In this document: positions 36,155 to 51,568 of the stretch, in pieces
Numbering within the stretch: the stretch's first letter is position 1
How the letters are laid out: every line of letters starts with the position of its first letter
DNA from: Asterias rubens
Taxonomy: Eukaryota
DNA: 64,000 nt
Assembly (NCBI RefSeq): GCF_902459465.1
Contig: NC_047067.1
Location: forward strand, 5,456,001-5,520,000
Direction: 5' to 3'
Notes under the pieces: model-generated
Database searches by the model: none
What the model saw: the letters and a program-made list of their open reading frames with translations, nothing else
What the model was told of the DNA's origin: nothing
Position numbers and translations under genes: made by a program

Positions 36155-36510
36155 TTCAAGGCACTGGACACTATTGTAACTCAAACTAATTGTTAGCATA
36201 AAAAAATACCTGGTAACAAGCTATGTAGAGAGCTGTTGATAATATAAAACAATGTGAGAAACTGCTCCCTCTGAACGTAGTTTTTGATAAAGAGGTTATT
36301 TCACACTCAAATACCACAGACCGGAAGCTCGTTTTAGGCATCTGAAAGCACACAAATTTGTGAGACAAGGGTGTTTATTCTTTCATTATTCTCTTGCAAC
36401 TTCGATGACCGATAATGAGTAAAAATTTTCACAGATTTGTTATTTTATGCATACATGTATTTTGGGATACACCAAGTGAGAATAGGCCTACTGTTTTTTG
36501 ACAATTGCCG
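36155..36510 (+). mobile_element. Family A-related degenerate copy
   Basis: GGCACTGGACACTATTG start and shared internal motifs. Confidence 0.7.
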
Positions 36511-37010
36511 AAGCTGTCGTGCTCGTATACGTAATATTGATCTTAATCTGTATTTTCTTGACAATCGGACTTAATCTCTGACACATTCTGAGTTGTTTCC
36601 TGACAGGCATGGTTCTAATGGACTGCTTCAATCATTCCAAAGAATAGAAGTTGACTAATGCTCATCCAAGTTAGAATTTTTTTTTTTTAAGATGAGCATT
36701 ACTTCAGTTACAGAAACTGAGCGTATTGCCGCCAAAGTTTTTGACTTGTCGTTTTTGTTCATGTGGCGGCAATACACTTCCGTACAAAAGCACGCACCCA
36801 TGTGATCATTGTTTAACCTCTATCACAACGACGTGATCTAGACTGGGACTAAAGACATGCAGAAAACTATCAAACGTATACTTTTTTCTAACACAAATCT
36901 CGTCACTCTTTTACCAGTGGAATCAGGTTTTCAAGCAGTTGTTTTACTTCTTTTCTTCTTTCAGTTGCCGTACCCAACATTGAAATGTAAAATCTGACGG
37001 TGCTTCCAAA

Positions 37011-37101
37011 ATGCATGGAGGACACACGTGCCTCATTGGAGTGTTGATTTTAACCACTTGCCTGCGCTGGTCGCACGGCCAAGCAACCCAACCGTCCAAA
37101 G
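37011..37101 (+). CDS. COLQ: ColQ-like coding exon 1 (signal peptide)
   Basis: [30 protein letters not shown]. Acceptor TTCTTTCAG ends at 36964; donor G|GTACGT; phase 1. Confidence 0.8.
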
Positions 37102-40100
37102 GTACGTTTGTAGGAGTATTCTTCAAAATATAATTAGCTGGCAAATAGTATTGGCCATTTTTTTATTTATTTTTTTATAGATATGGTGGACACCATGGGA
37201 CAATTTCATAGAGCTGCTTATGCACAAAAAATGTTTAAGCACGGAAATAGCTCGCTTATTTTACACATGTTACTGATGGCCAAATATTCATGCCATATAC
37301 ATTGCTTGTGACTGGTATTTAGCTGTTGTTTACTTAGCCTAACAATTGAGTGGAGTCTTGGCCGGCAATCTGATTTTACTAAGCAAGGATTTTTCTCGCC
37401 AAAGCAAATTTTGTATGAAATTGGGCCCATATGAGTACGCTGTTTGGTTTGGGTGTATACAGACGGAAATACCCAATAGTATTGTGTCCATCATATCTCA
37501 AAATGGCGAACGTAATTAATTTGTTTCTTTCTTCAGTAGAAACAGCTGCTGTTGTTATCAATAGTCAGTGGTAAAAACCCAGGAATGCCACAGGTGCACC
37601 AACTAAACCATCGCCCATAGCAAACAGGGAATCAGTTTGGTTTAGTGGTGTCTTGCCTCACTTCAACTTCTGGGGCCCCGGTTCAAGTGCTACCGAGGGC
37701 GCTATGTGGATTGGGTTTTCAGTCCACCTATAGCTTGAGTAGGCCTTTATTAGTCATGTAGGGGAAACAAAGTAGAAATCACTCTCGTTTTCAGTGTTGG
37801 TTCTACATTTATAATTAAACAAATCTATTGCACAACAAGTTTACCTTGCACAATCATCTTGTGCTCTTCTCAACTATTTGTGCTGCTTGATTGAAAATTT
37901 TGTTTATATATTTAGTTGAAACTGCATCCTTTACTCCAACCTGCCTTCCTTAGTTATTTATTGATTGATAGCTAATTTAAAATGTTTTTATTCAGTCTTA
38001 AAAAATCAACTTATTTTGTTTACTTTTAAAAACCTTTTATTTCTTATGCACTTTGCCTGTGACTTCACTTCTGCACCATGATAGCTATATACAACAGAAT
38101 AAGGGTTTCACCATACCATTGAGGAGTGGAGAATCGCCCCAGTCATTGCTTGTCATAATTCCCACAGTTTTATCCAATCAGTGGATTATCCACGGACTTA
38201 ATCCAATAATCCTCTCTGAGATAATCTTGGTGTTTTTTTCTTCCCGTCAGATTATTGCGAATATGAAGGCCAAATTATACCGAATAGAGAGAAGATAGTG
38301 CTGGAGAAAGACCCTTGTGTGAGATGCCGATGTAGGGTAAGACCTTATATAATTTAAAGAGGTGTAAACTTACACTTCCTTGTGCTGTAGCGCCTAGGAT
38401 ACTTACAGGATACTCTTTCACTTTGTTTTCGAAAATCTCAGCATAAGTCTGAGATATTCTGGATAAAACCATGACCAGCACACACATGCACACCCATCCA
38501 TTGACCACTTAACCCCCTACTCCCCTGGTGGTTATATATTTTTCTTATAAAAATAGAGTTTAAAAAAAAATGTTATTATAGCGCTTAACATGGGTCAGCT
38601 TGATATGTTTTATCTCCCAGCCTAACGAGAACATATCTAAGCTGATACCTAGCAAAATTTGTGCCTTTCTTAATACCTTAAAAGAATCAGTGTTGAAAAC
38701 TTGTGGCTGTACACAGAATTAGGGTCTGTCGCATGCATTATAATATGTATTGCGCATTATTTTATCAAAATAAACCACAAGGGAAACTGACTGGGTAAAT
38801 TTTGAAATGTTTTTTGGGGTTGAACAAAGAATTGACTAGAGTGGGATTCGAACCAACGCCCTCTGGTACGTTAATCCGGAGGTCGTTGGTTCGAATTCCA
38901 CTCTAGTCAATTCTTTGTTCAACCCCAAAAAGCGCGATATTTTAATCGATTAGAAGCACTTTGTAACACAAAACGCATGACTAAAAATCTGCAATCTTTC
39001 CTACCACAAAAACAGATTAAACTGTTATGTTTTGTAGCTGTTTATTTATTGTGGCTGAATGTTTAATTGTTTATTTCTACAGGATGGGGAGCTGAAATGT
39101 CGAACCATGACTTGTCCACAACAACAATGCAAGGAACTTATCCACAAACCGGGCACATGCTGCCCTAAATGCATATGTAAGTATTACATACCCATGGGAT
39201 TTAGCTGTACAATTTTTGCAAAGTCACATATAAACATGATCTCAACACTTGATCTTCCAAAACTTTTGTTTCCAAATATTTACACAAATAGATTCCTGTA
39301 TGAGTTGAGGCAATTGTAGAAGCAAGTATTTCAATTATTTGTGTCCTCATTGCCTAAGAACAGGTACCAAAGAAAACAGTTAAAAGTAAACCATTTTCAG
39401 ATTTATCATGTTTTAAATATAGGATAGTTTACAATAAAACAATGTATAAAACTTGTTTAAGAGTTTTTAAACACACTATCTCCTCCATTCATTCCAGCAT
39501 CACGCACAAACAGACATAAAGCCAGCAATAAATTCAAAGATGTCGCAATGACGATGGGCCTTGATATCGTTACTGATGGCTTGACGGTCGTCACAGTTCG
39601 ACTCCCACCACCCCCCATGATACCCCCTCCTCCCCCATCCATGCTCGCAGCAATGATTGCAAATAATACCGACTTATTGCCGATGTTTACCACAACGACG
39701 ACGACGACGACTACGGTGGATTTACCTACTGAAGAACCAGCCACGATTATATCGCCAAGAACCACCAGGATGACCCGGGCACCACCGACGCCCCCACCCA
39801 CACCACCACCACCATCACCGGTCACAAGAACAACAAAGGTTAGTATTGTTCTGACTGAGTTACTGTGCTTGTTTGTATGTTTGTCTTTTTGTCGAGTCAA
39901 GATCATCTCAACAAACAAACAGTAACTCAGTCAGTCACTAGAAATTTGATTTTTACTGATTGGAGTGTGGGCTTGAGACCCGATTGTGACACTTTTATCC
40001 TTGAGCAAGACACTTTACTATAAAAAACATGCTACCGATTGGTGTATAGGGCCTACCTTATCTCTTTTTCTACCTCCATGCTCAGATGGAACCCTCATCT

Positions 40101-43100
40101 TCCAATGAGGGTAGCTGGTTCCGAAGCAGGAAATCTAAAGTCATTGTCACATAAGGCAATTTATTAGCAACCAGTTCCAGGCAACATCTAAGAAGAAAAG
40201 TTTGGCATATAAATTTTCACCTATTTTTCTTGTGGATCAGAGGACAATGTTCGAAAAATGACTTGTGTCCTTTCTAAGGGGTCCAGTAGCATGCACTTCA
40301 GTTGGTTGCCTTCAAGATGCATGTAAAAGTTACCTTGTGTGACAAGGCCCTTATGGTTTTAAGTATCTTTGTCAAATAAACTATATAGGTTAGGATAACC
40401 CTTTACTTTGATTGAAGGCCTCATTGCCCAATGAGGGTAGCTGTTTCCCAACCAGGAATCCTGATTTGTCATAATGTTGGTGTGTTTGAAATCTTCATAA
40501 AAAAATTAAGATAAATAATTTATTTTGCATGTTTCATGTCAACTTGTTTATTTGCTTTGCTTTGCCAATGTATCAAAACCCCAATCTGTGCTTTTGTTTT
40601 TGATTCTGTTTGCATGCTGTCTTATTTTAAAGATTAAACCTACCCCAAAGCCCAGACCCACCAGGCGACCCCAAAAACCCACAGAACCGTGCATGAAAGG
40701 TGAACCAGGAACAAGTGGGGTCAAAGGTGAAACGGGTGCCCCTGGATCCCCAGGCATGCAGGTACATTTTTCTCTAAGGCTGTCATGTAAATTTATTTGC
40801 TCTTCTCGTGCATCTTCCTCCTCCTCATCATAATCTACATCAAGTCTCTCTCCATTCCTTGCTTGTTATACTTCTTCATGTTTCCCTCCCTCTTTTGATT
40901 GTCCTTCATGGTCAAACCCATCTCCGTTCTTTTTGGCCACACTCAGTGTCTTAATTTTGTACGCAATATGCAAACCCCATGTCCTCTTCACTTTCCTTAT
41001 TATAAAGATGTGAATTTTTTTTCAAATCCTGAATTGATAACTTTTAACATTGAGATTTTACCCTTTTTTTAAGACACTGCAAGTTTTAATGGGTTAAGTA
41101 TGGGTTAAGATTTCTTTTATTTGTGAAATTTTTTAAAAGCACACTTTTTTTCCAGACACAAGGCAAGAGGTCCACTTACCTAATAGCTCAGAAATACTCA
41201 AATTATATGTACAATCACAAAAGAAATTCCCTTGATTTTTTTTTTAAATCCCACTATCACTAGCTAAAGCCACTTACCAGATGAGATGAGGGCTACATGC
41301 CAATATAAAAAAGAGAGAAGATGCCTGTAGATATTAAACTTTAATAGATTGTAAGATGCTTGGAAAACAGGTATGGAGGTCCAAAGTGAGGCAGTAAAAG
41401 GTGAAGAGCCAGTAGATTACCTCACAATACTGACATTTAGAAAAGATACCAAAAAGGGACAAGAAGAGGCAAAATTATAGAGGATTTGAAGAATAACTTG
41501 AACTGATAAAAAGCAAATTCAAACAAACTTTGCTAACCCGTAGAATGTTCTTACTTGTTGGGGATACAAACAACTATCCCCACCACCAATGAATATTTGG
41601 TTTACAAGTATAGAAATTACACTAATATGTAGAAACAATTATTCTGTCAGAGTATTTTCCTAAACTTAATAGTGGAGGAAGCCAGTCAGTAACTGAACGA
41701 TATACGTAATACATGCTTCTCCTTTTTGTTTGACTCACTAAAAACCAGCACTTCAAAACAGAATTTATAAAAACACATCTTATTCAAAACATAACCCAAG
41801 AAGAAGACAAAAAAATGAAATAAATAATTGAATTAATAAAGAGTAAAAAAAACAATTTAAAAAAGTTAAACAACAAGTAAATTAAACATTAATTACAAAA
41901 TAAAAATGAACAGTAAAAATATTACAATACATACAAAGTAACAAAAAACATTAACAAATAACCAAATAAAATGACAGGTTAAATTTTATTTACCGAACAG
42001 CTCAGAAAAGTTCCAATATGTACAATTATTTTAAAATAAACCACTGATTTGTATTTTAATTCCTACTCTCGCAAGCTTAAGCCACTTGCCAGCCATGCCA
42101 ACACTATTTGTAAAACCCTTAACGTGGCCACCACCCGAATCAGAAATTATAATAAGCACCACATATAAAAATTATCCTTGGAAATATTTTGGAGGCTTAT
42201 GTATTTTGAAATTCAATTAGCGCTGGAGTGCAGTCGCAATCTGTTCAGCTGAAACACGCAGGTTATCCACGGATACAGATGGATGCCGATCAAACTTCTG
42301 ACATTTGACCCTCGCTAGATTGAATTAATAAAAATTGTCTACAGTCAATCCCCTCCCCTCTTGGCATGTTGATAACACAATTATTATTATACGACCTACG
42401 ACTATGATGGGGAACGAATGAAATTAGTGCCTGAATAATTTTGGAAAATTAATCTTTGGTTCAGTTCTTGAAGACAACTGGGATTAAGTCACTGCAAAAA
42501 GAATCAATGAAACTATTAAAAAACAGCAAAAAAAAGAGCAAAATTTCTCTGCATTTAAATTCAATACAAGTCTGTATAGTGATTGTCCCCCCCCCCGACT
42601 TTACAATGTATTTACAAGATTTGCTTTGATTTTAAAGAGTTGCCTCTTTAACTGTTCCTAACTCTTTGTTCCTTACCCTTCCTATATTATCATTGCTATC
42701 ATATTTAACAAATTATTATTTTGATTGCATTAAATCTCAAACTAAATTGTTTGCTTTTTCATGATCCCCTGTCCCTGAATACAGCCCATTCAAACAGCAT
42801 AAAATACAATCCCACACAACTAATATTTTTTGGGCTTAAGGAAACAAAATGTAGGTAAGCCCAATATAATTATGCTTACCAGAAGAAAGTTATTAGCTAA
42901 AGAACCATGTCACACATGTCATCAGTGACTGATACCCTGCTCATTTTAGCTTAGCAGAAATTTGTAAGCAATAATTTGTACTGAAGTTGCTCTGTGAAAT
43001 TGTGGATGTATGTTTGGAGCTCTATCAAAAAAAAACAAAAAAAACACCTGCTGCAAGGTTTTAATGAATTTTTAATAATGTTGTATAATAGGATGGCTGG

Positions 43101-46100
43101 TTGTGTTTTAATTTTAGGGTCCGAATGGTACCCCGGGACCTACAGGGCCAACAGGATTGAAAGGAGACACAGGGGAACCAGGACCCCAGGTAAATCAAGT
43201 TTGTGTCAAGTACATAGATACTAAGTGACATATATTCTCATAAATTTACAATCTTTTCAAAAGATTTTCCAAAGTCTTACGTCAGACTTTGTCTTAATTA
43301 AGACAGACTTTGTGAGTCTTAAGTCAGACTCTATGAGTTAACTGTTAACTTAAAGGCACTGAACACGTTTGGTAATTGTCAAAGACCAGTGTTCTCACTT
43401 GGTGTATCCCATCATAAGCCTAAAATAACCAGCCTGTGAAAATTTGGGCTCAAACGGTCATCGAAGTTGCGAGAAAATGATGAAAGAAAAAACACCCTTG
43501 TTGGACGAATTTGTGTGCTTTCAGATAGGAATAAAAGACTTCTAGCTTGAAGTCTTTTATTATTTTAGTGAGAAATAACCAAACGTGTACCTTCCCTTTA
43601 ATACTTTAATTGGTTAATCAAAGTCACTTGAAAACTGTATAAAAGTGTTGATTTAATTTAAGTTGCTGCTTTAAGAGTCTAGGCCTACATAAATATTACA
43701 GTAAAAAAATGGGTTCATTTTTACCTTCCCGGCTAAAAACTGGAGTAACCTTTCTGAAAGGGGACAATGTGTCAGAGGGCCAGACGAGTCCATGACTCAA
43801 CAGACAACATCATCAGCATCATATAGCATCCCTTGACAACTCAGTCTCATCTCTAGTCTCAAGAGACAATTAAAAACCTGTACAAGATCATCTCTTTCCT
43901 TAATGCCAGACAGAGGGGAACTGGTTGAACTTAGTTGAAAACAACTGGGATATAGAGAGATGAGTAGTGGTGATGAAATAATGTAGCTGGAAGTTCACTA
44001 AGTGTCAGATTTGTAGAGCGATGACCACACTGTTCGACTCCGAAATTAATTTCCCGGTATACATCTAGAAAGCTTTTCCTAAGAGCTTTATTTTGACAAG
44101 TATAAAAGGTTTTTTTTGCACTAACTTAGCATGACCTTCATATTCTAAATCAGCAGAGCATTCATATACTTCATTTTGTCTTTATATTGTTTCAAGTCTT
44201 AGTATTAATTGACCTAGGGATCATACTATATCTTTATCATGCATTTTCACTGTATCATGCATTTGCGCATTATCATGGAGGTTTGCAAGCAATTAGTATA
44301 AGTTTTGAAGGGTATTAACTCCACTACAGGAGCGTTATAACTCCTCAGAATGTCACATCTATTTGTAACTTATTATTTATTCATTAACAATTATAGGACT
44401 GATACTTTGTTCTTGTAAGGACTAAGCAGTTTTTCATAATTAAAGGGCGTTTGTACTTTTTGTAGGAAAAAAAAAAACACAATGTCCACAGATCTACACT
44501 AAACTTACACAGTTTAAAGACAATGATAGTAGAAAGCTTCCCTGAAAATATTACGTGCTGAGGTGCTGTAGTTTTGGGGAAATGAGTAAAACAATGTCAT
44601 GAAAATAATTTTGGTCTCATGAGACCAAAATTATTTTAAGCATTTACAAACGTATTTTAATGACATTGTTTTACTCATTTCTCAAAAACTGCAGCACCTC
44701 AGTAAGTAATATTTGAAGGGAAGCTTTCCACTATCATTATCTGCAAACCCTGTAGGTTTAATGTAAATCTATCAACATTTTGAAAAAATCCTTTAAGGGC
44801 ACCTTAATGAAGGAAATGCAAATTAATTTTGTAACATTTAAAGGAACACGTTGTCTATAAAAAGCGTTTGAAACCGTTTGTTATGAAATGTATATGGTTA
44901 GAAAGATGTTTTAAGAGTAGAATATAATGATCCACACAAGTATTACTCAAAGTTGCACGGTTTTCTTTTTACGTCGCGAACTATCACGGTCGGCCATTTA
45001 TGGGAGTCAAAATTTTGACTCCCTAAATGGCCGACCGTGTTATTGGACGAGGTAATAAGAAAACCACACAATTTCGAGGCATGTTTGTGTGGATCATTGT
45101 ATTCTACTTTTACATCATCTTTCTAACCATATGCATTTTATAACAAAAACGGTCACAAAACGCATTTCAAAGACCAACTCGACCGATCCAAGGCAACGTG
45201 TTTCTTTAAAGGGCACAAAGGCAATGACCAGGGCCATGAAAGCAACTACCATCATTGTCTTCTAGAAGTATCAGGCCTGTATGTTGTTTGTAGGTTGATT
45301 CTAAACCTTGTTTGTTTTTCTTGTTTTTATCATCATCAGGGTCCAAAAGGTGACACAGGACCTAAGGGTGAACGGGGTCTTCCGGGCCCAAGAGGGCCAA
45401 CTGGACCAAAAGTGAGTCTTTCAAATATGAGTTCTCTCCCATCCATATCCCAAAAAGGATAGGTGGGGGCGAAAGAAACAACAAATCCAAAACAACAGCA
45501 CACAACACCTAGCATCCCCAAGTGTAGAACTTCAAAAAATGAAAAGGAATGTCAGCCTTAGTGTTATGGATAGCCATATGATATTAGCCTAGATACAAAT
45601 TTCTACTTCTAGGTGAGGGGAAGCAATCATGGAGCATGTTTTCTTAGTACCTGTATTTAAATCAGAATAAACATCCAGTTCCACACAAGTGTTATTTACT
45701 GTCCTGAAATACAAAGTTAGTGATGAGATAGACACCTGGGCTCAATTTCATAGAGCTACTAAACCAGACAATTTTGCCTGAAACATTTTCTGCTTAGCAA
45801 AAATAAACAGGATATCATTTACAGATTATTCTTAATTCATGTGACATGGTAGTTTTGTCGGTAACCTTATTGTGGTAGGTATAATTTTGTTGTACTTAGC
45901 TGCATTTTGGGCTATAGGTAGCTCTATGAAATTAGGCCCTGGTAGTTATTGTTATTTTAACTTACAGGTGAGCCTTTGGGAAAGACTTTGCTTGGGTCTA
46001 AATGTTACGTCACTTTATGCATTTTGCTGTAGGTAGTTTTAGCATAGAAAAAGGACTGTGGTCCTTTCTCTGTGGTTTTAGTAAAAGTGAGCAGTTTGCA

Positions 46101-49100
46101 ACAGCTAATTTTCCCTTCATTTTTCAATATTTATCTTTTGTTATAATTTACTATCTGTAGGGATCGTTTGGTATGCCTGGACCCAGAGGACATTCTGGAA
46201 AGAAAGGCCCTAAAGGAAATACTGGAAGGAAAGGAAGAAAGGTAAAATATATTTTACAGTTTTTGTTTTTAAAACCTGAAAAAACCCCACATGCAGTTCT
46301 AAAATCAACCAACATTTGTTACAGTTAGGAAAAGAACATAACAATGTTAATCCACTCTTGAGATGGAAGTATAGACCCCTTGTACACGAGCCCCAAACCA
46401 CGCCCTCACTGAGGTCAATGAAGAATTTTCATTGGCCGAGAGTAGTGCGCAGCGCATACATGCCTGCAAGTTTCCATTGTTTGAACTCAGCGATGGTGAC
46501 CGATGCAAGACTTCTTTTTATATTTTCTTTAACTCTGATATTCTTTCACCTGCTACTCACCAAGATTATGCTACCAGTTAGAATTTTCAGAACCGAGTAA
46601 AAACATTATATTTATACAGAGCTTAAAAGCACTGTATTCTCTGTACCTTCCCGAGTCCTCTGAGACAGATCCACCGGCAAATCTCCTCGGGTGGGATTCA
46701 AACCCGGGACCTTTGCACAGCGAGTTAAAATACTTATCAAGGATTAATTTTGTTACATTTTTTATATTTTTATTTAACTCTGATGTTTTTTCACTTGCTA
46801 TATTCACTTTTAAGATGATGCTGCAATTTGTTTATCCCTTGAACAAAGTCAATAATTTTTGTATTAAGCACAGTACTTTCCCCAAGTTCTCTGAAAGAAA
46901 TCCACAGGCAGTCCTATCAGGTGGGACCTTTGCATAGCAACTCAAAAATACAAAATTTTGTTCCCATTTTGATTCAGGGTGATCCAGGGGAGAGAGGTCC
47001 AGTGGGTCCAGAGGGAATCCAAGGACTTCCCGGCCACGTTGGCTTGCCCGGGCCAATGGGACCACCAGGAAACAGTAAGCAGTTAGTTACTCAATTAAAG
47101 ATGCTATGTCAGATTTTTGGCCGATTTGACCCAACAATTTTGATTTAAAATTCAATAGGTATTTTAATGGGGGTCGAGAAAGTTACAAGCTTTCATTTGA
47201 GCCATTGCTCGAAAAAGTCCGCCAATTATTAGTAGCAGTGAAATAAAGTGCTCAAAATTAGTTTTTGTCGGGATCCCGACAATATATCACGTGACCAATT
47301 CTTATGTGTTTTATAAGAAACGTTTTAAATTTTTGTCATGGTTCCTGACCATTAAAAGTAAAAGTTAAACTGTTTTTCGTTAGAGCGCGTGATAATCTTT
47401 GAAATACAATTCACTCAAAAATATATATTTTTTAATGTTTGGGGCCAAAAATCTGACATATCATCTTTAATAAGAGCAGTGTCCTCTTTACATGAACTGG
47501 ATACCTTTGGTAATTGTCCAAGAACAGTATTCTCACATGGTGTAGGCCTATCCCAACATAGCCTATGCATAAAAATAACAAAATCTGTGAAAATTTTGCT
47601 CAATTGGTCATTGAAGTTGCAAGGGAATAATGAAAGAAAAATCACCCTTGTTGCACAAATTTTGTGCTTCAGGTCCAAAAAAAGGTTTAGGCCTTCCTTC
47701 TTTCTCAGATTCAGATACTTTAAAATATTTGAATCTAAGAAAGACTGTTTTATACTACCAACAGCTCTCCGTTGCTTGTTAATACAAATTAAGTCTTAAT
47801 GCTAACAATTATTTTGAGTAATTACCAATAGTGTCTGGTGCCTTTTTAACAAATACTTGATTTCCATTTAAATTGAATCTTATTGCTTTTACAAACTTTC
47901 TTGATGATTATTCAGATGCTGGAGGAGTTGAAGGGCCAAGGGGACCTGTTGGGCCGCCGGGTCTACCTGGGTTGCAGGGTCCTTCTGGTAAACTAGGTCC
48001 ACAAGGGGTCAAAGGTGAAAAGGGAGACCCTGGTAACAAGGTCATGGAAGGGGTAAGTCATATTTAGACAGAAAGATCAGTTGTGTATATTTGGTACATT
48101 TTGCATTTTTTGTATATTCTGCATAGTTTTCCTTGTTTTGCATATTCTGTATATTATATCTTGAGTATTTTGTATACTATTTTGCATACTTTTGGGAATT
48201 CATTTTGCACATTTTGTATATTTTGCATTTTATGTACTAATTTTGAAAATTGTGCATAATGTGTATTTTCAAATATTGCATATTTTGTATTTTTGTATAC
48301 TATGAATAGTTTTGCATTTGTATTGTGTATATGTTTTGTATTTCTTGCATTTTTGTTCATTAGGGCCTACTAAAGAAAAACTTTATTTACAAAATAATTT
48401 ATTGAATCTAAGCAAAAACTTAACGAATCTATGCGAGTTGCAAGACACTTAGAAAGTTTGTTTATTAACCGTTCATTAATTCCAGTAAAAGATGTTTGAC
48501 CCTCTTTCCCTTTTTCCCTCCATCCCCCCAGCAAATAGTCATTGTGCCCAATGAGATCGCTATGCAGACAATCCGTGCAGAAGCAGCCATCGTCTATCGG
48601 ACAGATGTGAAAAAACTCTATTTCAGAGACACGGACGAGTGGAATTGTTTAATGGTCGAGGATAGCACAAAGGTCGTCACAGGTCCCCCTGGACCCCCAG
48701 GACCTCCTGGAGAAATGGGACCCACTGGTCCACAGGGACCAAAAGGGGAGACGGGGGACATGACGGAGCCGGATGATAAGGATGACAATAGTGTAAGGGT
48801 TAGGTTTCTTTGTATTGATATACTTTATACACGGTGTCATGGCCGATTGATTTAGCGCATCAAATTCAAGTTCTGGTGCAGGCCTGTATGCTTCGTTTTT
48901 GAAAGGGCAAGGGCACCAAGGCATTTTCTCCTTGGTAAAGGGCCCCTATGAGGACATTGAATATTTCTACTGGAGCATTTTAAGGGCACCAAGGCACTGA
49001 CCAGTGGGCAAGGAGGCAATCACCTCCAATGCCTTCGTAAAGTGTCAAGCCTGCTGGTGGTTTAGTCATCGGGGTAAGGGTTCTAATCCCTGAAAAAAGC

Positions 49101-51568
49101 AGGTCAGGTTTGTTCTCAACATTTAAAACAAACCCTCTGCTCGTCTTCTTCTCCTAAAGATGAGCAGAGTACTGTTTGAAATGTTAAGATCAAACCAGCT
49201 CTTTTCAGAGCCAACACTTCCTCAAAGTTGATTCAATACATGGTTGTACCCGCAAGTTTACTGTTATTTCTAGTTTATTCTTAATATGCACATCATGCAA
49301 AGCAACTTATTTTCTTGTGGCACAGTGATTTTAGTCATTCGCCCCCTATGGCATTGACTTCATAAGAACATGCTGCATTCCACACAGCGAGTTTTAAACT
49401 AACCATCAGACTCATGCATTTCTACTCGTTTTGATTTTTCAGATTTGTGGAAATGCTATCTTAGAGGGGAAGGAAGAATGTGATGATGGAAACTTTATAC
49501 ACACAGACAGTTGCATCAGTAAGTGACTTTTCCCTTCTGCTGCTTTTTATTCAACAGTATCTTCTGGTATACAGTTTTTCTTTGTCGTTTCCTTCCTTCA
49601 TTATACAGGTCAAGTCACTTCACCATGAGCATCCTCAGTTGGATATCTGCACATTATAGTGTGTCCTCATTATTATTTTTGTTTATGGTTCATATTTTAT
49701 TGTGAACTTTGTAAATGCTTTATTGTACCTGTACATTGTCATTGCGACAGACGTCTTCGAACTACTACATTGTAGTTAACATCTATTATACATTGTAGTT
49801 GCATTGCTTTTTACTGTATTAAGCCCGGTTCATACTTCCTGCGAATGCGAATGCGAAGCGAATGTTGACGTCACAACAATCGCAAGGAATATTCGCAGCA
49901 GTTCAGCTCCGTTCACCTCACTTGCGAATATCGCTGCGAAAGGATAGTTGTGACGTCAAATTCACGTCAAATTCGCTTCGCATTCGCATTCGCAGGAAGT
50001 ATGAACCGGGCTTTAGGGTGTTCTTTCACCTTTTTTGTCAATAAGGCTTTGATTTCTATTTTGCTTCTTTTTACTGGTGTACTTTTTCTTAAACTTTTGC
50101 TGTGTTTTTTTCTTATGACATTTTTACTGTTATGCGCCCTCGAACAGGCTGGTCCTGGAGAGAGCGCAGTATAAAGTCAATAAATGAGTATTATCATGGT
50201 AATTATATTCTTTTTAGACTGTATGAGATCATTCTGTGGAGACACCTACAGACAACAAGGAGTAGAAGAGTGCGATACGCTTGACTTCAACGGAAAAACA
50301 TGCGATTCCTATTTTACAGAGTGAGTATCAATACCTCAAAACAAAAACCCATCCCATGCTAAAATCTGTTGGAATACTTACATACATTTAAGTTGATAGT
50401 TACTGCCTCCAAACTATTCACTTAAATTATAAAGAACAGAAATAATAGTTTATGTGGTTTTGTTTTATCTTATGGCATGATACACATTATTTTTGTTGTT
50501 GTATTAAACTTGTGCCAGAGGCTTTGATTGTGATCATGCCATCTTCCTTGTGTGATTGAATGATGTATACATTTTGTCTGCCAAGGTCCTTTGTCGAACC
50601 ACAGCTTTGGCACTTGCTTAGACTCTGGCTTAAGCTCTGATCTTGGCTTAGGTTCTGTCAATTATTTTGTTAAATGTATGCTTTATGTCCAGGGCTTCAA
50701 ACAGACAGACAGAGCCTAAACCAAACCCCAAGCTGAAGCTGTGATTTTAAGAAAAGAGCAAAATTTTGTTTCCCTTCCTCGCTCAGATGAATTTACAGGT
50801 TTTGTGTATAGAGCTAGGCCTTTTTATTTTCTATTTTGTGAGTGTTTGTTCATATTTAACACATTTGTTTTGCAATAGCCTACAGTATTTCTTTCTGTAT
50901 CGACTACATTTTTCTTTCTTGTCTCTACTGTCTAACTTTAACTTCTCTTTTTTTTCATCTCAAAGCGCATAGAGATTTTTCTATGATTGTGATATGCGCT
51001 ATACAAGAATGGTTCATTATTATTATTATATTGTACCTCCCTTGGTTCTGTTTGTGGATGTTCATTGTTCGTTATTACAAATTGACGTTTATATAAACCT
51101 GCAGGGTTGCTGAACAACTATTTATAATTTTAAGTTTTGAAGTTTGTTAATTTATATTTGTTTACTTTAATTTGTATTTTTCAGACTATTTTGAAGTATG
51201 AAACTATTCTATCAGGGCTGATAGGCTTAATTATTTGTATTGCTGACTTTTGGATGCTTTTTATCATTAAATAATATTATTAATATTTTAACGTTCTACT
51301 TGTAATGATGAAAATGATGCTCGGCAGGGATAAGCTGGAATTAGTGAAAACAAACCTTTCTTTCATACATTTTGACATTTGTGATCAAGAATAAGAAAAG
51401 AATAAGATAGTTAACCTTTAACTCTCAAGATTATCTCTTGACAGATACGAGACAATGGGCGTCTTGAGGTGTACAGACCGCTGCAGGATTGATACTGGTA
51501 ACTGTAAAGTAGTCCGACGGAGAAGGCGACAGCTATCACCCTATCAAATCCCTCCGCCAGAAAAGTAA
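37011..51568 (+). CDS. COLQ: ColQ-like secreted collagen (AChE collagenic tail family), 14 coding exons, 587 aa
   Basis: Hand-spliced with GT-AG introns and consistent phases: 37011-37101, 38251-38336, 39083-39176, 39498-39838, 40633-40761, 43118-43189, 45340-45411, 46161-46241, 46978-47074, 47916-48052, 48532-48792, 49443-49518, 50218-50320, 51445-51568 (1764 nt). Domain order: signal peptide, vWC, PRAD-like, Thr/Pro stalk, PCMKG, about 56 Gly-X-Y triplets with one interruption, [23 protein letters not shown], 9 more triplets, [33 protein letters not shown]...[15 protein letters not shown]. This matches the human ColQ C-terminus as I recall it (CGDG..ECDDGN..DDCIRCHRAYCGDG..GVEDCDGSDF..TCETY..GDLQCTQYCYIDSTPC). 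Confidence 0.88.
38251..38336 (+). CDS. COLQ: ColQ-like exon 2 (vWC N-half)
   Basis: [29 protein letters not shown]; CCGTCAG| and |GTAAGA. Confidence 0.88.
38811..38931. repeat. Inverted repeat of two SINE-like B-box segments
   Basis: 48-bp arms (38811-38858 and 38884-38931) with one mismatch. Confidence 0.9.
39083..39176 (+). CDS. COLQ: ColQ-like exon 3 (vWC C-half)
   Basis: [31 protein letters not shown]; |GTAAGT. Confidence 0.9.
39498..39838 (+). CDS. COLQ: ColQ-like exon 4 (PRAD-like motif and Thr/Pro stalk)
   Basis: Open frame SRTNRHK...[13 protein letters not shown]...T9...[19 protein letters not shown]; TTCCAG| and |GTTAGT. Confidence 0.85.
40633..40761 (+). CDS. COLQ: ColQ-like exon 5 (start of collagen domain)
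   Basis: [43 protein letters not shown]; |GTACAT. Confidence 0.9.
43118..43189 (+). CDS. COLQ: ColQ-like exon 6 (8 Gly-X-Y)
   Basis: 72 bp, [24 protein letters not shown], phase 0/0. Confidence 0.92.
43350..43601 (-). mobile_element. Family A subfamily (TTAAAGGGAAGGTACACGTTTGG terminus)
   Basis: TTAA ends; same subfamily as 57008-57425. Confidence 0.8.
44440..44796. mobile_element. MITE family B
   Basis: TTAAAGGG...CCTTTAA with a loopless central palindrome. Confidence 0.87.
44838..45209. mobile_element. TTAA-flanked MITE (TTAAAGGAACACGTTG TIR)
   Basis: Right end CAACGTGTTTCTTTAA; internal inverted repeats. Confidence 0.8.
45340..45411 (+). CDS. COLQ: ColQ-like exon 7 (8 Gly-X-Y)
   Basis: 72 bp, [24 protein letters not shown]; |GTGAGT. 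Confidence 0.92.
46161..46241 (+). CDS. COLQ: ColQ-like exon 8 (9 Gly-X-Y, basic cluster)
   Basis: 81 bp, [27 protein letters not shown]. Confidence 0.92.
46978..47074 (+). CDS. COLQ: ColQ-like exon 9 (collagen)
   Basis: [32 protein letters not shown]; |GTAAGC; phase 1. Confidence 0.92.
47480..47849 (-). mobile_element. Family A-related degenerate copy
   Basis: Ends GAGTAATTACCAATAGTGTCTGGTGCCTTTTTAA. Confidence 0.7.
47916..48052 (+). CDS. COLQ: ColQ-like exon 10 (collagen end)
   Basis: (N)[45 protein letters not shown]; |GTAAGT. Confidence 0.9.
48080..48355. repeat. Low-complexity TTTTGCAT/TTTGTAT repeat tract
   Basis: Short T-rich motif repeated many times in a ColQ-like intron. Confidence 0.75.
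48532..48792 (+). CDS. COLQ: ColQ-like exon 11 (trimerisation-type segment plus extra 9 Gly-X-Y)
   Basis: [40 protein letters not shown]...[27 protein letters not shown]...NS. Donor |GTAAGG; an alternative phase-0 donor lies 6 nt downstream. Confidence 0.87.
48879..49053 (+). mobile_element. Family H, about 175-bp element with CAGGCCTG-like ends
   Basis: Core AAGGGCAAGGGCACCAAGGCATTTTCTCCTTGGTAAAGGG; also at 14228-14397(-), 21082-21227, 52735-52913, 63643-63815(-) and partials near 31655-31760 and 45210-45280. Confidence 0.8.
49443..49518 (+). CDS. COLQ: ColQ-like exon 12 (Cys-rich repeat 1)
   Basis: [25 protein letters not shown]; |GTAAGT. Confidence 0.92.
49822..50012. mobile_element. PIF/Harbinger-type MITE
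   Basis: 42-bp perfect TIR AGCCCGGTTCATACTTCCTGCGAATGCGAATGCGAAGCGAAT; TTA target duplication on both sides. Confidence 0.88.
50218..50320 (+). CDS. COLQ: ColQ-like exon 13 (Cys-rich repeat 2)
   Basis: [34 protein letters not shown]; |GTGAGT. Confidence 0.92.
51445..51568 (+). CDS. COLQ: ColQ-like terminal exon 14
   Basis: [41 protein letters not shown]; candidate AATAAA at 52381. Confidence 0.9.

Follow-up and report, generated by a model that had tools for sequence, protein, structure and literature searches.

The 64-kb window analysed here (64,000 nucleotides of Asterias rubens contig NC_047067.1; all coordinates are those of the window) contains a gene named in RefSeq 'acetylcholinesterase collagenic tail peptide-like'. 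The encoded protein begins with a signal peptide and a VWC domain; a 115-aa linker that includes a proline-rich motif leads to a collagen domain, and a C-terminal domain ends the chain. The features of the gene are listed below with the evidence for each in parentheses; protein-level analyses were based on RefSeq isoform P0001 and on single exons.

37011..37101, + strand: exon 1, which holds the start codon and encodes the signal peptide (37101 spliced to 38251 in an RNA contig, GT..AG)
38251..38336, + strand: exon 2, first half of the VWC domain (RNA joints; pLDDT 91-95)
39083..39176, + strand: exon 3, second half of the VWC domain, ending GTCCPKC (RNA joints; Pfam VWC, E 2e-4, for the exon alone)
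39498..39838, + strand: exon 4, the linker exon, with the PRAD-type motif, a poly-Thr run and a second Pro run (RNA joints)
39599..39640, + strand: conserved 14-residue core, the PRAD-type motif, which contains 39602-39637 (orthologue conservation, AF2)
39689..39715, + strand: poly-Thr run (T9), mucin-like and of variable length (translation)
39779..39820, + strand: second Pro run, 14 residues (translation)
40633..40761, + strand: exon 5, Lys/Pro/Thr-rich, with a single Cys and the start of the Gly-X-Y repeats (X2 RNA contig, to about 40761)
43118..48052, + strand: collagen exons 6-10 (Gly-X-Y runs, GT-AG, consistent phases, agreement with P0001)
43118-43189, 45340-45411, 46161-46241, 46978-47074, and 47916-48040 or 48052, + strand: the same collagen exons singly
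48532..48792, + strand: exon 11, a non-collagenous block (QIVIVPNE...LYFRDTDEW) and then a second, short stretch of collagen (alignment to ColQ)
49443-49518, 50218-50320, 51445-51568, + strand: exons 12-14, Cys-rich distal C-terminal domain and stop codon (Pfam DUF4215)

The original prediction placed a PRAD-like motif at 39602-39637 (+), and the transcript evidence bears it out. The motif is translated in frame within a transcribed internal exon (39498-39838, +), for which RNA contigs join 39176 to 39498 and 39838 to 40633, both with GT..AG borders; RNA contigs also place the VWC exons on the 5' side, the motif exon, and Gly-X-Y exons on the 3' side in the same spliced mRNA. A model with the motif exon as first coding exon (ATG at 39548 or 39554) is ruled out by the RNA acceptor at 39498 and the three exons upstream. 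Exon 5 is skipped in isoform P0001; its donor, read from the sequence, is at 40762 in phase 0, and no micro-exon was found between 40762 and 43118. Two positions compete for the start of exon 14, 51445 in this model and 51430 in RefSeq. In the AF2 model the signal-peptide region contains a helix at residues 5-21.

As judged from sequence, this Asterias rubens gene is orthologous to ColQ, and its product carries an additional VWC domain at the N-terminus. The 195-aa C-terminal region matches vertebrate ColQ in a protein search with E values of 1e-18 to 1e-13 at about 89% coverage, and amphioxus ColQ was also found; identity to platypus ColQ is 33% (E 2e-29), with the Cys pattern preserved up to the C-terminus. 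Further family traits are present: the protein is secreted, has a central Gly-X-Y collagen domain (Pfam Collagen, E 1.7e-28), and has a ColQ-type C-terminal domain, composed of the LYF[KR]D..W block and a distal Cys-rich part. The exon 11 block aligns with the proximal C-terminal region of ColQ (VIFVVNNQEE...LYFKDS.GW); this non-collagenous block served as the query that retrieved the orthologues, and one gene per species was recovered. A basic-residue cluster lies within collagen exons 6-10, with comparable clusters in orthologues, and may correspond to the heparan-sulfate binding sites of vertebrate ColQ. A search for protostome orthologues with the starfish and Ptychodera C-terminal regions, its sensitivity limited by a word-based prefilter, returned nothing beyond collagens of deuterostomes and bacterial proteins with DUF4215 repeats.

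The VWC domain spans 57 residues (residues 33-89 of P0001; Pfam PF00093, score 32 bits, cut-off 27.6). It lies N-terminal to the motif in all ambulacrarian orthologues and is missing from amphioxus and vertebrates, so that vertebrate ColQ has no counterpart of it. The N-terminal region of ColQ is essentially the PRAD, whereas the starfish protein begins with the VWC domain; what precedes the motif is the mature N-terminus in vertebrate ColQ and the VWC domain plus a disordered segment of about 35 residues in the starfish. The predicted placement of the motif upstream of the collagen domain is correct, and in vertebrate ColQ the motif likewise follows the N-terminal part and precedes the collagen domain; however, the starfish motif is not near the protein N-terminus as it is in vertebrates, since it follows the VWC domain.

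The pattern of at least four prolines, one or two other residues, and at least four further prolines (P4+ x1-2 P4+) occurs once in the six-frame translation of the window, flanked by VTVR before and SML after. Orthologues were compared from 13 ambulacrarian species, covering all five echinoderm classes and the hemichordates (three asteroids, one ophiuroid, three echinoids, two holothurians, two crinoids, and two hemichordates). In this set the block [R/T]L[P/L]PPP[M/I/V][I/T]PPPPPS has a pairwise identity of 0.889, compared with 0.160 for the rest of the linker; the linkers are 101-149 aa long and, outside the motif, align poorly and with many gaps. A variable motif between conserved flanks had been named beforehand as an outcome that would count against the prediction, and the opposite was observed. 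Ten of the 12 invariant linker columns in the 13 species fall within the 14-residue motif. Amphioxus has a close variant, FPPPPIPPPPPPTS, at the equivalent position, and in both crinoids the whole canonical motif is duplicated, giving two full copies. In comparison with transcripts of a related species, seven of eight substitutions in exon 4 are synonymous, and both nucleotide differences within the motif are silent; the poly-Thr run has one additional ACG in those transcripts. In the AF2 model the motif forms a local pLDDT bump (66-78) with neither helix nor strand, and neighbouring segments are below 50; such an isolated non-helical segment amid a linker of very low confidence is the picture expected, at the level of a predicted model, for a docking peptide.

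These data bear on whether the motif is simply part of an ordinary low-complexity linker, with no specific function and a chance likeness to a PRAD. The exon around the motif is indeed Pro/Thr-rich and disordered, and it lacks both a family assignment and a database match: Pfam assigned no family to the linker exon alone, and among proteins of 62-198 aa in a set of 5.8 billion, 4965 share words with the linker exon and none matches it at E <= 1. That explanation is nevertheless very improbable, given ten invariant columns in 14 residues from crinoids to acorn worms between flanks at 16% identity, the exact duplication of the whole motif in crinoids, and the silence of both nucleotide differences in the motif.

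The motif resembles the PRAD of vertebrate ColQ, for instance human residues 72-86 (LLTPPPPPLFPPPFF) or the form found in many teleosts (PPPPPLFPPPPSLW). Like a PRAD, it is an extracellular proline-rich core of about 15 residues that is compatible with a polyproline-II helix and is itself under evolutionary constraint. In both, some nine prolines are interrupted by a hydrophobic pair, with hydrophobic residues on either side of the whole; the pair is aliphatic, M/I/V-I/T, in the ambulacrarian motif and L/M-F in vertebrate ColQ. The 4-2-5 proline layout of the starfish also occurs in two of 86 vertebrate PRADs, and a 4-1-6 layout in one. The carriers are orthologous, and the starfish motif is very probably homologous with the vertebrate PRAD, as a cysteine-free form of it. 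Similarity between proline-rich segments is not statistically scorable, which leaves some room for convergence; the case for homology is built on carrier orthology, position, and pattern.

The PRADs of ColQ and PRiMA are defined in part by two adjacent Cys, whose disulfides tie them to the tail Cys of two catalytic subunits. As predicted, the starfish motif has no such pair: the linker is free of Cys N-terminal to the motif, from the VWC domain onward, and the nearest CC is that of the VWC 'CCPKC', about 40 residues upstream. With no CC directly upstream, no disulfide to enzyme tails is possible there. A CC within 8 residues upstream of the PRAD is found in 85 of 86 vertebrate ColQ sequences versus none of 18 invertebrate sequences. 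Because the pair is missing throughout the invertebrate orthologues, a non-covalent, ancestral-type PRAD, which the original prediction had put forward as possible, is a fair reading, in line with the ColQ orthology, position, and conservation described above; the part of it that concerns cholinesterase tails is something that we infer.

The prediction took as established that the PRAD polyproline-II helix threads four WAT helices of AChE_T, that the Cys pair adds disulfides, and that polyproline alone can drive tetramer assembly, and this background is stated in the literature (bioRxiv 10.1101/431288). The human butyrylcholinesterase (BChE) tetramer contains a proline-rich peptide without a covalent link, and its WAT helices bind the PRAD via stacking and hydrogen bonds; vertebrate WAT tetramers can be organised by any polyproline of such length (bioRxiv 10.1101/431288). 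If WAT-tailed enzymes pass through the secretory pathway together with the starfish motif, they would therefore be expected to bind it. In human plasma BChE the polyproline peptides are derived from lamellipodin; they are cysteine-free and are held non-covalently by four WAT helices around a polyproline-II helix, which is the mode proposed for the starfish. They differ in being free fragments of an intracellular protein taken up by the enzyme, not a dedicated conserved site on a matrix collagen. PRiMA, the membrane anchor of brain AChE, is similar in that an extracellular proline-rich rod organises T-type cholinesterase tetramers, and differs in being a small, non-collagen transmembrane protein with conserved Cys beside its PRAD. 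A PRiMA-like small carrier of the starfish motif was not found among the 62-198 aa candidates, a weak test, nor were exon-level fragments.

By analogy with these systems, the motif is a putative non-covalent dock that plausibly binds WAT-type esterase tails in the starfish. The explanation that we favour overall, with moderate confidence, is a ColQ orthologue whose cysteine-free PRAD docks WAT-type tails non-covalently. The constrained 14-residue segment would form a polyproline-II rod. In the secretory pathway this rod would be wrapped, as in vertebrates, by four WAT-type tails, the tryptophan-rich helices at the C-termini of cholinesterase-like enzymes. Each collagen strand would then bear a tetramer, and anchoring of the complex in the extracellular matrix would fall to the C-terminal domain and the basic clusters of the collagen. 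Since there is no Cys pair before the motif, the complex would be held non-covalently, like plasma BChE tetramers on free polyproline peptides. A WAT-like heptad-Trp peptide was sought in the 64-kb window, and the only two matches are both due to chance and lie outside gene models.

Alternatively, the conserved motif could, as a polyproline-II helix, dock some partner that is not a cholinesterase tail, the cholinesterase link having arisen only in the vertebrate line together with the added Cys pair. The peptide-substrate-binding domain of collagen prolyl 4-hydroxylase binds poly-L-proline, and it, or another secreted or ER protein, is a possible partner of this kind. Conservation reveals constraint and does not name the partner, and the Cys pair that ties the vertebrate PRAD to the WAT Cys is missing in 18 of 18 invertebrate sequences. 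In addition, a full-text literature search covering invertebrate ColQ, PRAD, and the tails and molecular forms of echinoderm cholinesterases returned no report of a collagen-tailed cholinesterase in echinoderms. Such a history would, however, require a switch of partner despite a motif position and pattern kept in an orthologous protein, and the sole known N-terminal function of ColQ is the binding of cholinesterase tails. We consider a different partner rather unlikely.

The second Pro run reported in the original prediction is present at 39779-39820, and the suggestion attached to it was that each chain has two docking sites, the conserved motif and this run. In the run's favour, its core is identical in three asteroids (Asterias, Acanthaster, and Patiria), several Pro columns in the region are near-invariant, and pLDDT rises slightly there in the AF2 model (71-75); BChE tetramers can also be organised by proline runs that lack hydrophobic residues (bioRxiv 10.1101/431288), and the two canonical copies in crinoids indicate that two sites per chain can exist. 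Beyond the three starfish the run is merely Pro-rich, and variable in sequence and length, in urchins and holothurians, and it is missing in the brittle star (Amphiura), in the hemichordates Ptychodera and Glandiceps, and in amphioxus. Neither the hydrophobic pair at the centre of the conserved motif nor that motif's L...S frame is present in the run, which is broken by Thr and Ser, lies next to the poly-Thr run, and resembles an O-glycosylated mucin-type spacer. With the run conserved so loosely, there is little to support a second docking site in Asterias, which in our estimate is quite improbable.

To our knowledge, collagen-tailed acetylcholinesterase is usually regarded as vertebrate-specific and tied to the neuromuscular junction, and nothing on invertebrate ColQ was found in the literature searched. 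The sequence comparisons described here suggest that the enzyme anchor predates vertebrates. Carrier and motif can be dated to the deuterostome ancestor, being present in echinoderms and hemichordates with a close variant in amphioxus, and the vertebrate site can be separated into two parts, a proline rod that is old and a disulfide lock (CC) seen in vertebrates only. In echinoderms, extracellular matrix lies between motor nerves and muscles, so a matrix-anchored esterase would be physiologically sensible.

Natural cysteine-free PRADs are also candidate organisers of recombinant cholinesterase tetramers, and tetramer organisation bears on the circulating half-life of bioscavenger BChE (bioRxiv 10.1101/431288). 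A broader proposal, which we regard as unlikely and offer tentatively, is that the cysteine-free PRAD of the VWC-bearing ColQ of echinoderms and hemichordates serves in the matrix as a general scaffold for a whole family of secreted esterases with WAT tails, acetylcholinesterase being only one of them. If so, mixed non-covalent tetramers would form on the collagen stalk, arranged in crinoids as two tiers on each strand, and the PRAD-WAT association would have begun in the deuterostome ancestor as a general tether of enzymes to the matrix; the narrowing to synaptic AChE and the disulfide locking would have come later, in vertebrates. When and why the PRAD-WAT hetero-oligomer originated is now directly testable.

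The Asterias rubens gene is a transcribed orthologue of ColQ (collagen Q) with a cysteine-free, strongly constrained polyproline motif at the position of PRAD, the proline-rich attachment domain. The encoded protein is laid out as follows.

Signal peptide: first in the protein
VWC domain: after the signal peptide (Pfam PF00093, score 32 bits, cut-off 27.6); holds the sole starfish CC, about 40 residues upstream of the motif
Linker, 115 residues: after the VWC domain; holds the motif (39602-39637, + strand, 12 residues by translation), the T9 run and a second proline run (39779-39820, 14 residues)
Collagen domain: after the linker; includes a basic cluster
C-terminal part: non-collagenous block, short second collagen stretch (48682-48762), then a Cys-rich end that carries a repeat of the DUF4215 type

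NCBI gives the RefSeq isoform P0001 the name 'acetylcholinesterase collagenic tail peptide-like isoform X1 [Asterias rubens]', and by sequence comparison the ColQ name is warranted for its C-terminal half. The last 195 residues match ColQ of amphioxus and about a hundred vertebrates (E 1e-18 to 1e-13, approximately 89% of the region covered); the remaining matches are only bacterial DUF4215 repeat proteins, covering a quarter to half of the region. Against platypus ColQ (33% identity, E 2e-29) every Cys is aligned through to the last residues, in an alignment that starts at the proximal block (IVIVPNE...LYFRDTDEW in starfish, IFVVNNQ...LYFKDSVGW in platypus). The searches found one gene per species, and the starfish gene is treated here as the ColQ orthologue. 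The short second collagen stretch is a feature of ambulacrarian ColQ orthologues, whereas vertebrate ColQ has an unrelated spacer in its place.

Contigs from four RNA-type runs, aligned over 36800-42799, support the splice joints 37101>38251, 38336>39083, 39176>39498, and 39838>40633, all GT..AG; the remaining exons are inferred from Gly-X-Y frames, GT-AG sites, and phases. Because the contigs join 39176>39498 and 39838>40633, the motif exon (39498-39838) is internal to the spliced transcript and the motif does not lie at the protein start. Translation of the reverse strand at 39602-39637 gives no meaningful product, and in a six-frame translation of the 64-kb window the pattern P(>=4)-x(1-2)-P(>=4) occurs only at the motif. 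One of the four runs shows no differences from the window; the other three are from a related organism, a few per cent divergent, and seven of their eight substitutions in the motif exon are synonymous. These include the two at the motif, which fall at third codon positions: 39601 in the Arg codon immediately preceding it and 39613 in a Pro codon within it. The T9 tract (39689-39715) has one ACG more in the related species' transcripts and there is a 3-nt deletion at 39763-39766; both keep the frame and alter the length of the mucin-like part of the linker, whereas the motif is fixed.

The gene model is consistent with P0001 except for exon 5 (40633-40761), which is present in one RNA contig and absent from P0001 and from the Acanthaster model. 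Exon 5 is Lys/Pro/Thr-rich and contains the first Gly-X-Y repeats and the sole Cys ahead of the collagen domain; an equivalent Cys-containing segment is kept in Patiria, urchins, and sea cucumbers. This may be alternative splicing, determining whether disulfides can link the strands where the helix begins at its N-terminal end.

In intron 1, the RNA contigs at 37200-37400 sum to a depth of 5x10^4 to 1x10^5 in all four runs; this stretch consists of many short loose-ended contigs and looks like a transcribed high-copy repeat. A near-perfect 121-nt hairpin in intron 2 (38811-38931; 56-nt arms, 95% complementary, 9-nt loop) has a contig depth of about 10^4 and only sub-threshold Rfam matches, to MITE-derived plant miRNA families. 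Probably it belongs to a MITE-type or foldback repeat of which many copies are transcribed. An ARAGORN scan of 36500-39500 detected no tRNA. Between exons 4 and 5, the intron carries a 40-nt direct repeat (40093-40132 and 40419-40458, 85% identity, 326 bp apart).

Orthologues were collected by a search with the non-collagenous exon, two homologue searches, and a cluster look-up. They come from starfish (Acanthaster, Patiria), a brittle star (Amphiura), sea urchins (Diadema, Strongylocentrotus, Lytechinus), sea cucumbers (Holothuria, Apostichopus), feather stars (Antedon, Anneissia), and acorn worms (Ptychodera, Glandiceps). Each has a VWC domain and a linker 101-149 residues long, and shares the block [R/T]-L-[P/L]PPP-[M/I/V]-[I/T]-PPPPP-S; both acorn worms have a 17-residue string nearly that of starfish. 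An unconserved motif between conserved flanks would have told against the original prediction, but the reverse is seen: in a MAFFT alignment of 13 linkers, mean pairwise identity is 0.889 over the 14 motif columns and 0.160 over the linker remainder. Ten of the 12 invariant columns among 204 fall in the motif, and a second alignment gives the same pattern. This conservation contradicts the reading of the motif as a low-complexity stretch without meaning, which is scarcely credible.

Both crinoids have two complete motif copies (LPPPPVIPPPPPS and LPPPPITPPPPPS in Antedon), a doubling that by its sequence is a duplicated unit, more than proline richness. The copies lie approximately 45-65 residues apart (residues 80-140 of the Antedon orthologue P0011 and 115-190 of the Anneissia orthologue P0145). 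In amphioxus, ColQ is without the VWC domain and reads GPFPPPPIPPPPPPTS in the equivalent place, or FPPLPIPPPPPPTS in one allele.

The suggestion of two docking sites per chain fares less well. The second proline run is present at 39779-39820, but it is fixed within starfish only; in urchins and sea cucumbers the region is simply rich in Pro, and the brittle star, acorn worms, and amphioxus do not have it. The run also adjoins a poly-Thr tract, resembling a mucin-type spacer. A second docking site here is improbable.

The polyproline-II rod in the crystal structure of PRAD with the tryptophan-rich tail helix of cholinesterases (WAT) is human ColQ residues 72-86, LLTPPPPPLFPPPFF (bioRxiv 10.1101/431288). 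A motif is recognisable in 86 of the fetched vertebrate sequences, of which 54 have the most frequent layout, five Pro, two hydrophobic residues, and four Pro (typically CCLLSPPPPPLFPPPPSLW); two share the starfish 4-2-5 layout and one the amphioxus 4-1-6 layout. The clear difference is in the Cys pair: a CC lies within eight residues upstream of the motif in 85 of the 86 vertebrate sequences and in none of 18 invertebrate sequences. The lone starfish Cys encoded by exon 5 corresponds in position to the vertebrate pre-collagen Cys, not to the PRAD pair. The motif is very probably homologous with vertebrate PRAD.

AlphaFold2, given residues 1-210 and the alignment of 13 sequences, predicts a confident VWC domain (pLDDT 91-95) and very low-confidence linker on both sides of the motif (pLDDT <50 at 101-122 and 149-169). 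The motif itself, a local bump (66-78), has neither helix nor strand; a short helix comes after it (139-145). The model gives no sign of the motif packing against the VWC domain. The prediction, which carries little weight, is consistent with a docking peptide that lies exposed within a disordered tether.

Automatic annotation has already noted that the gene resembles ColQ. A literature search, with much of the cholinesterase literature outside its reach, returned no description of how deeply the attachment motif is conserved, the consistent lack of the Cys pair in non-vertebrate ColQ, the VWC domain ahead of the motif, or the doubled crinoid motif.

Four WAT helices wrap PRAD non-covalently and antiparallel; two tail Cys of AChE bond with two Cys adjoining PRAD, and BChE tetramers bind cysteine-free polyproline peptides without a covalent link (bioRxiv 10.1101/431288). 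PRAD is the only part of ColQ needed for AChE association, and mice with the PRAD exon deleted lose the collagen-tailed enzyme. The rod might serve a different partner, with cholinesterase binding a later addition; this is unlikely, as it requires a partner switch at an orthologous site, and WAT-tailed enzymes sharing the secretory pathway would be expected to bind the rod anyway. By analogy with the vertebrate complex, WAT docking by the starfish motif is reasonably probable. The motif would dock tetramers of enzymes bearing WAT-type tails, non-covalently and one per strand, onto the collagen stalk. Because WAT and PRAD are antiparallel, the catalytic domains would lie on the collagen side, and the VWC domain, approximately 35 disordered residues off on the opposite side of the motif, should not obstruct them; the C-terminal domain and basic clusters of the stalk would anchor the complex in the matrix.
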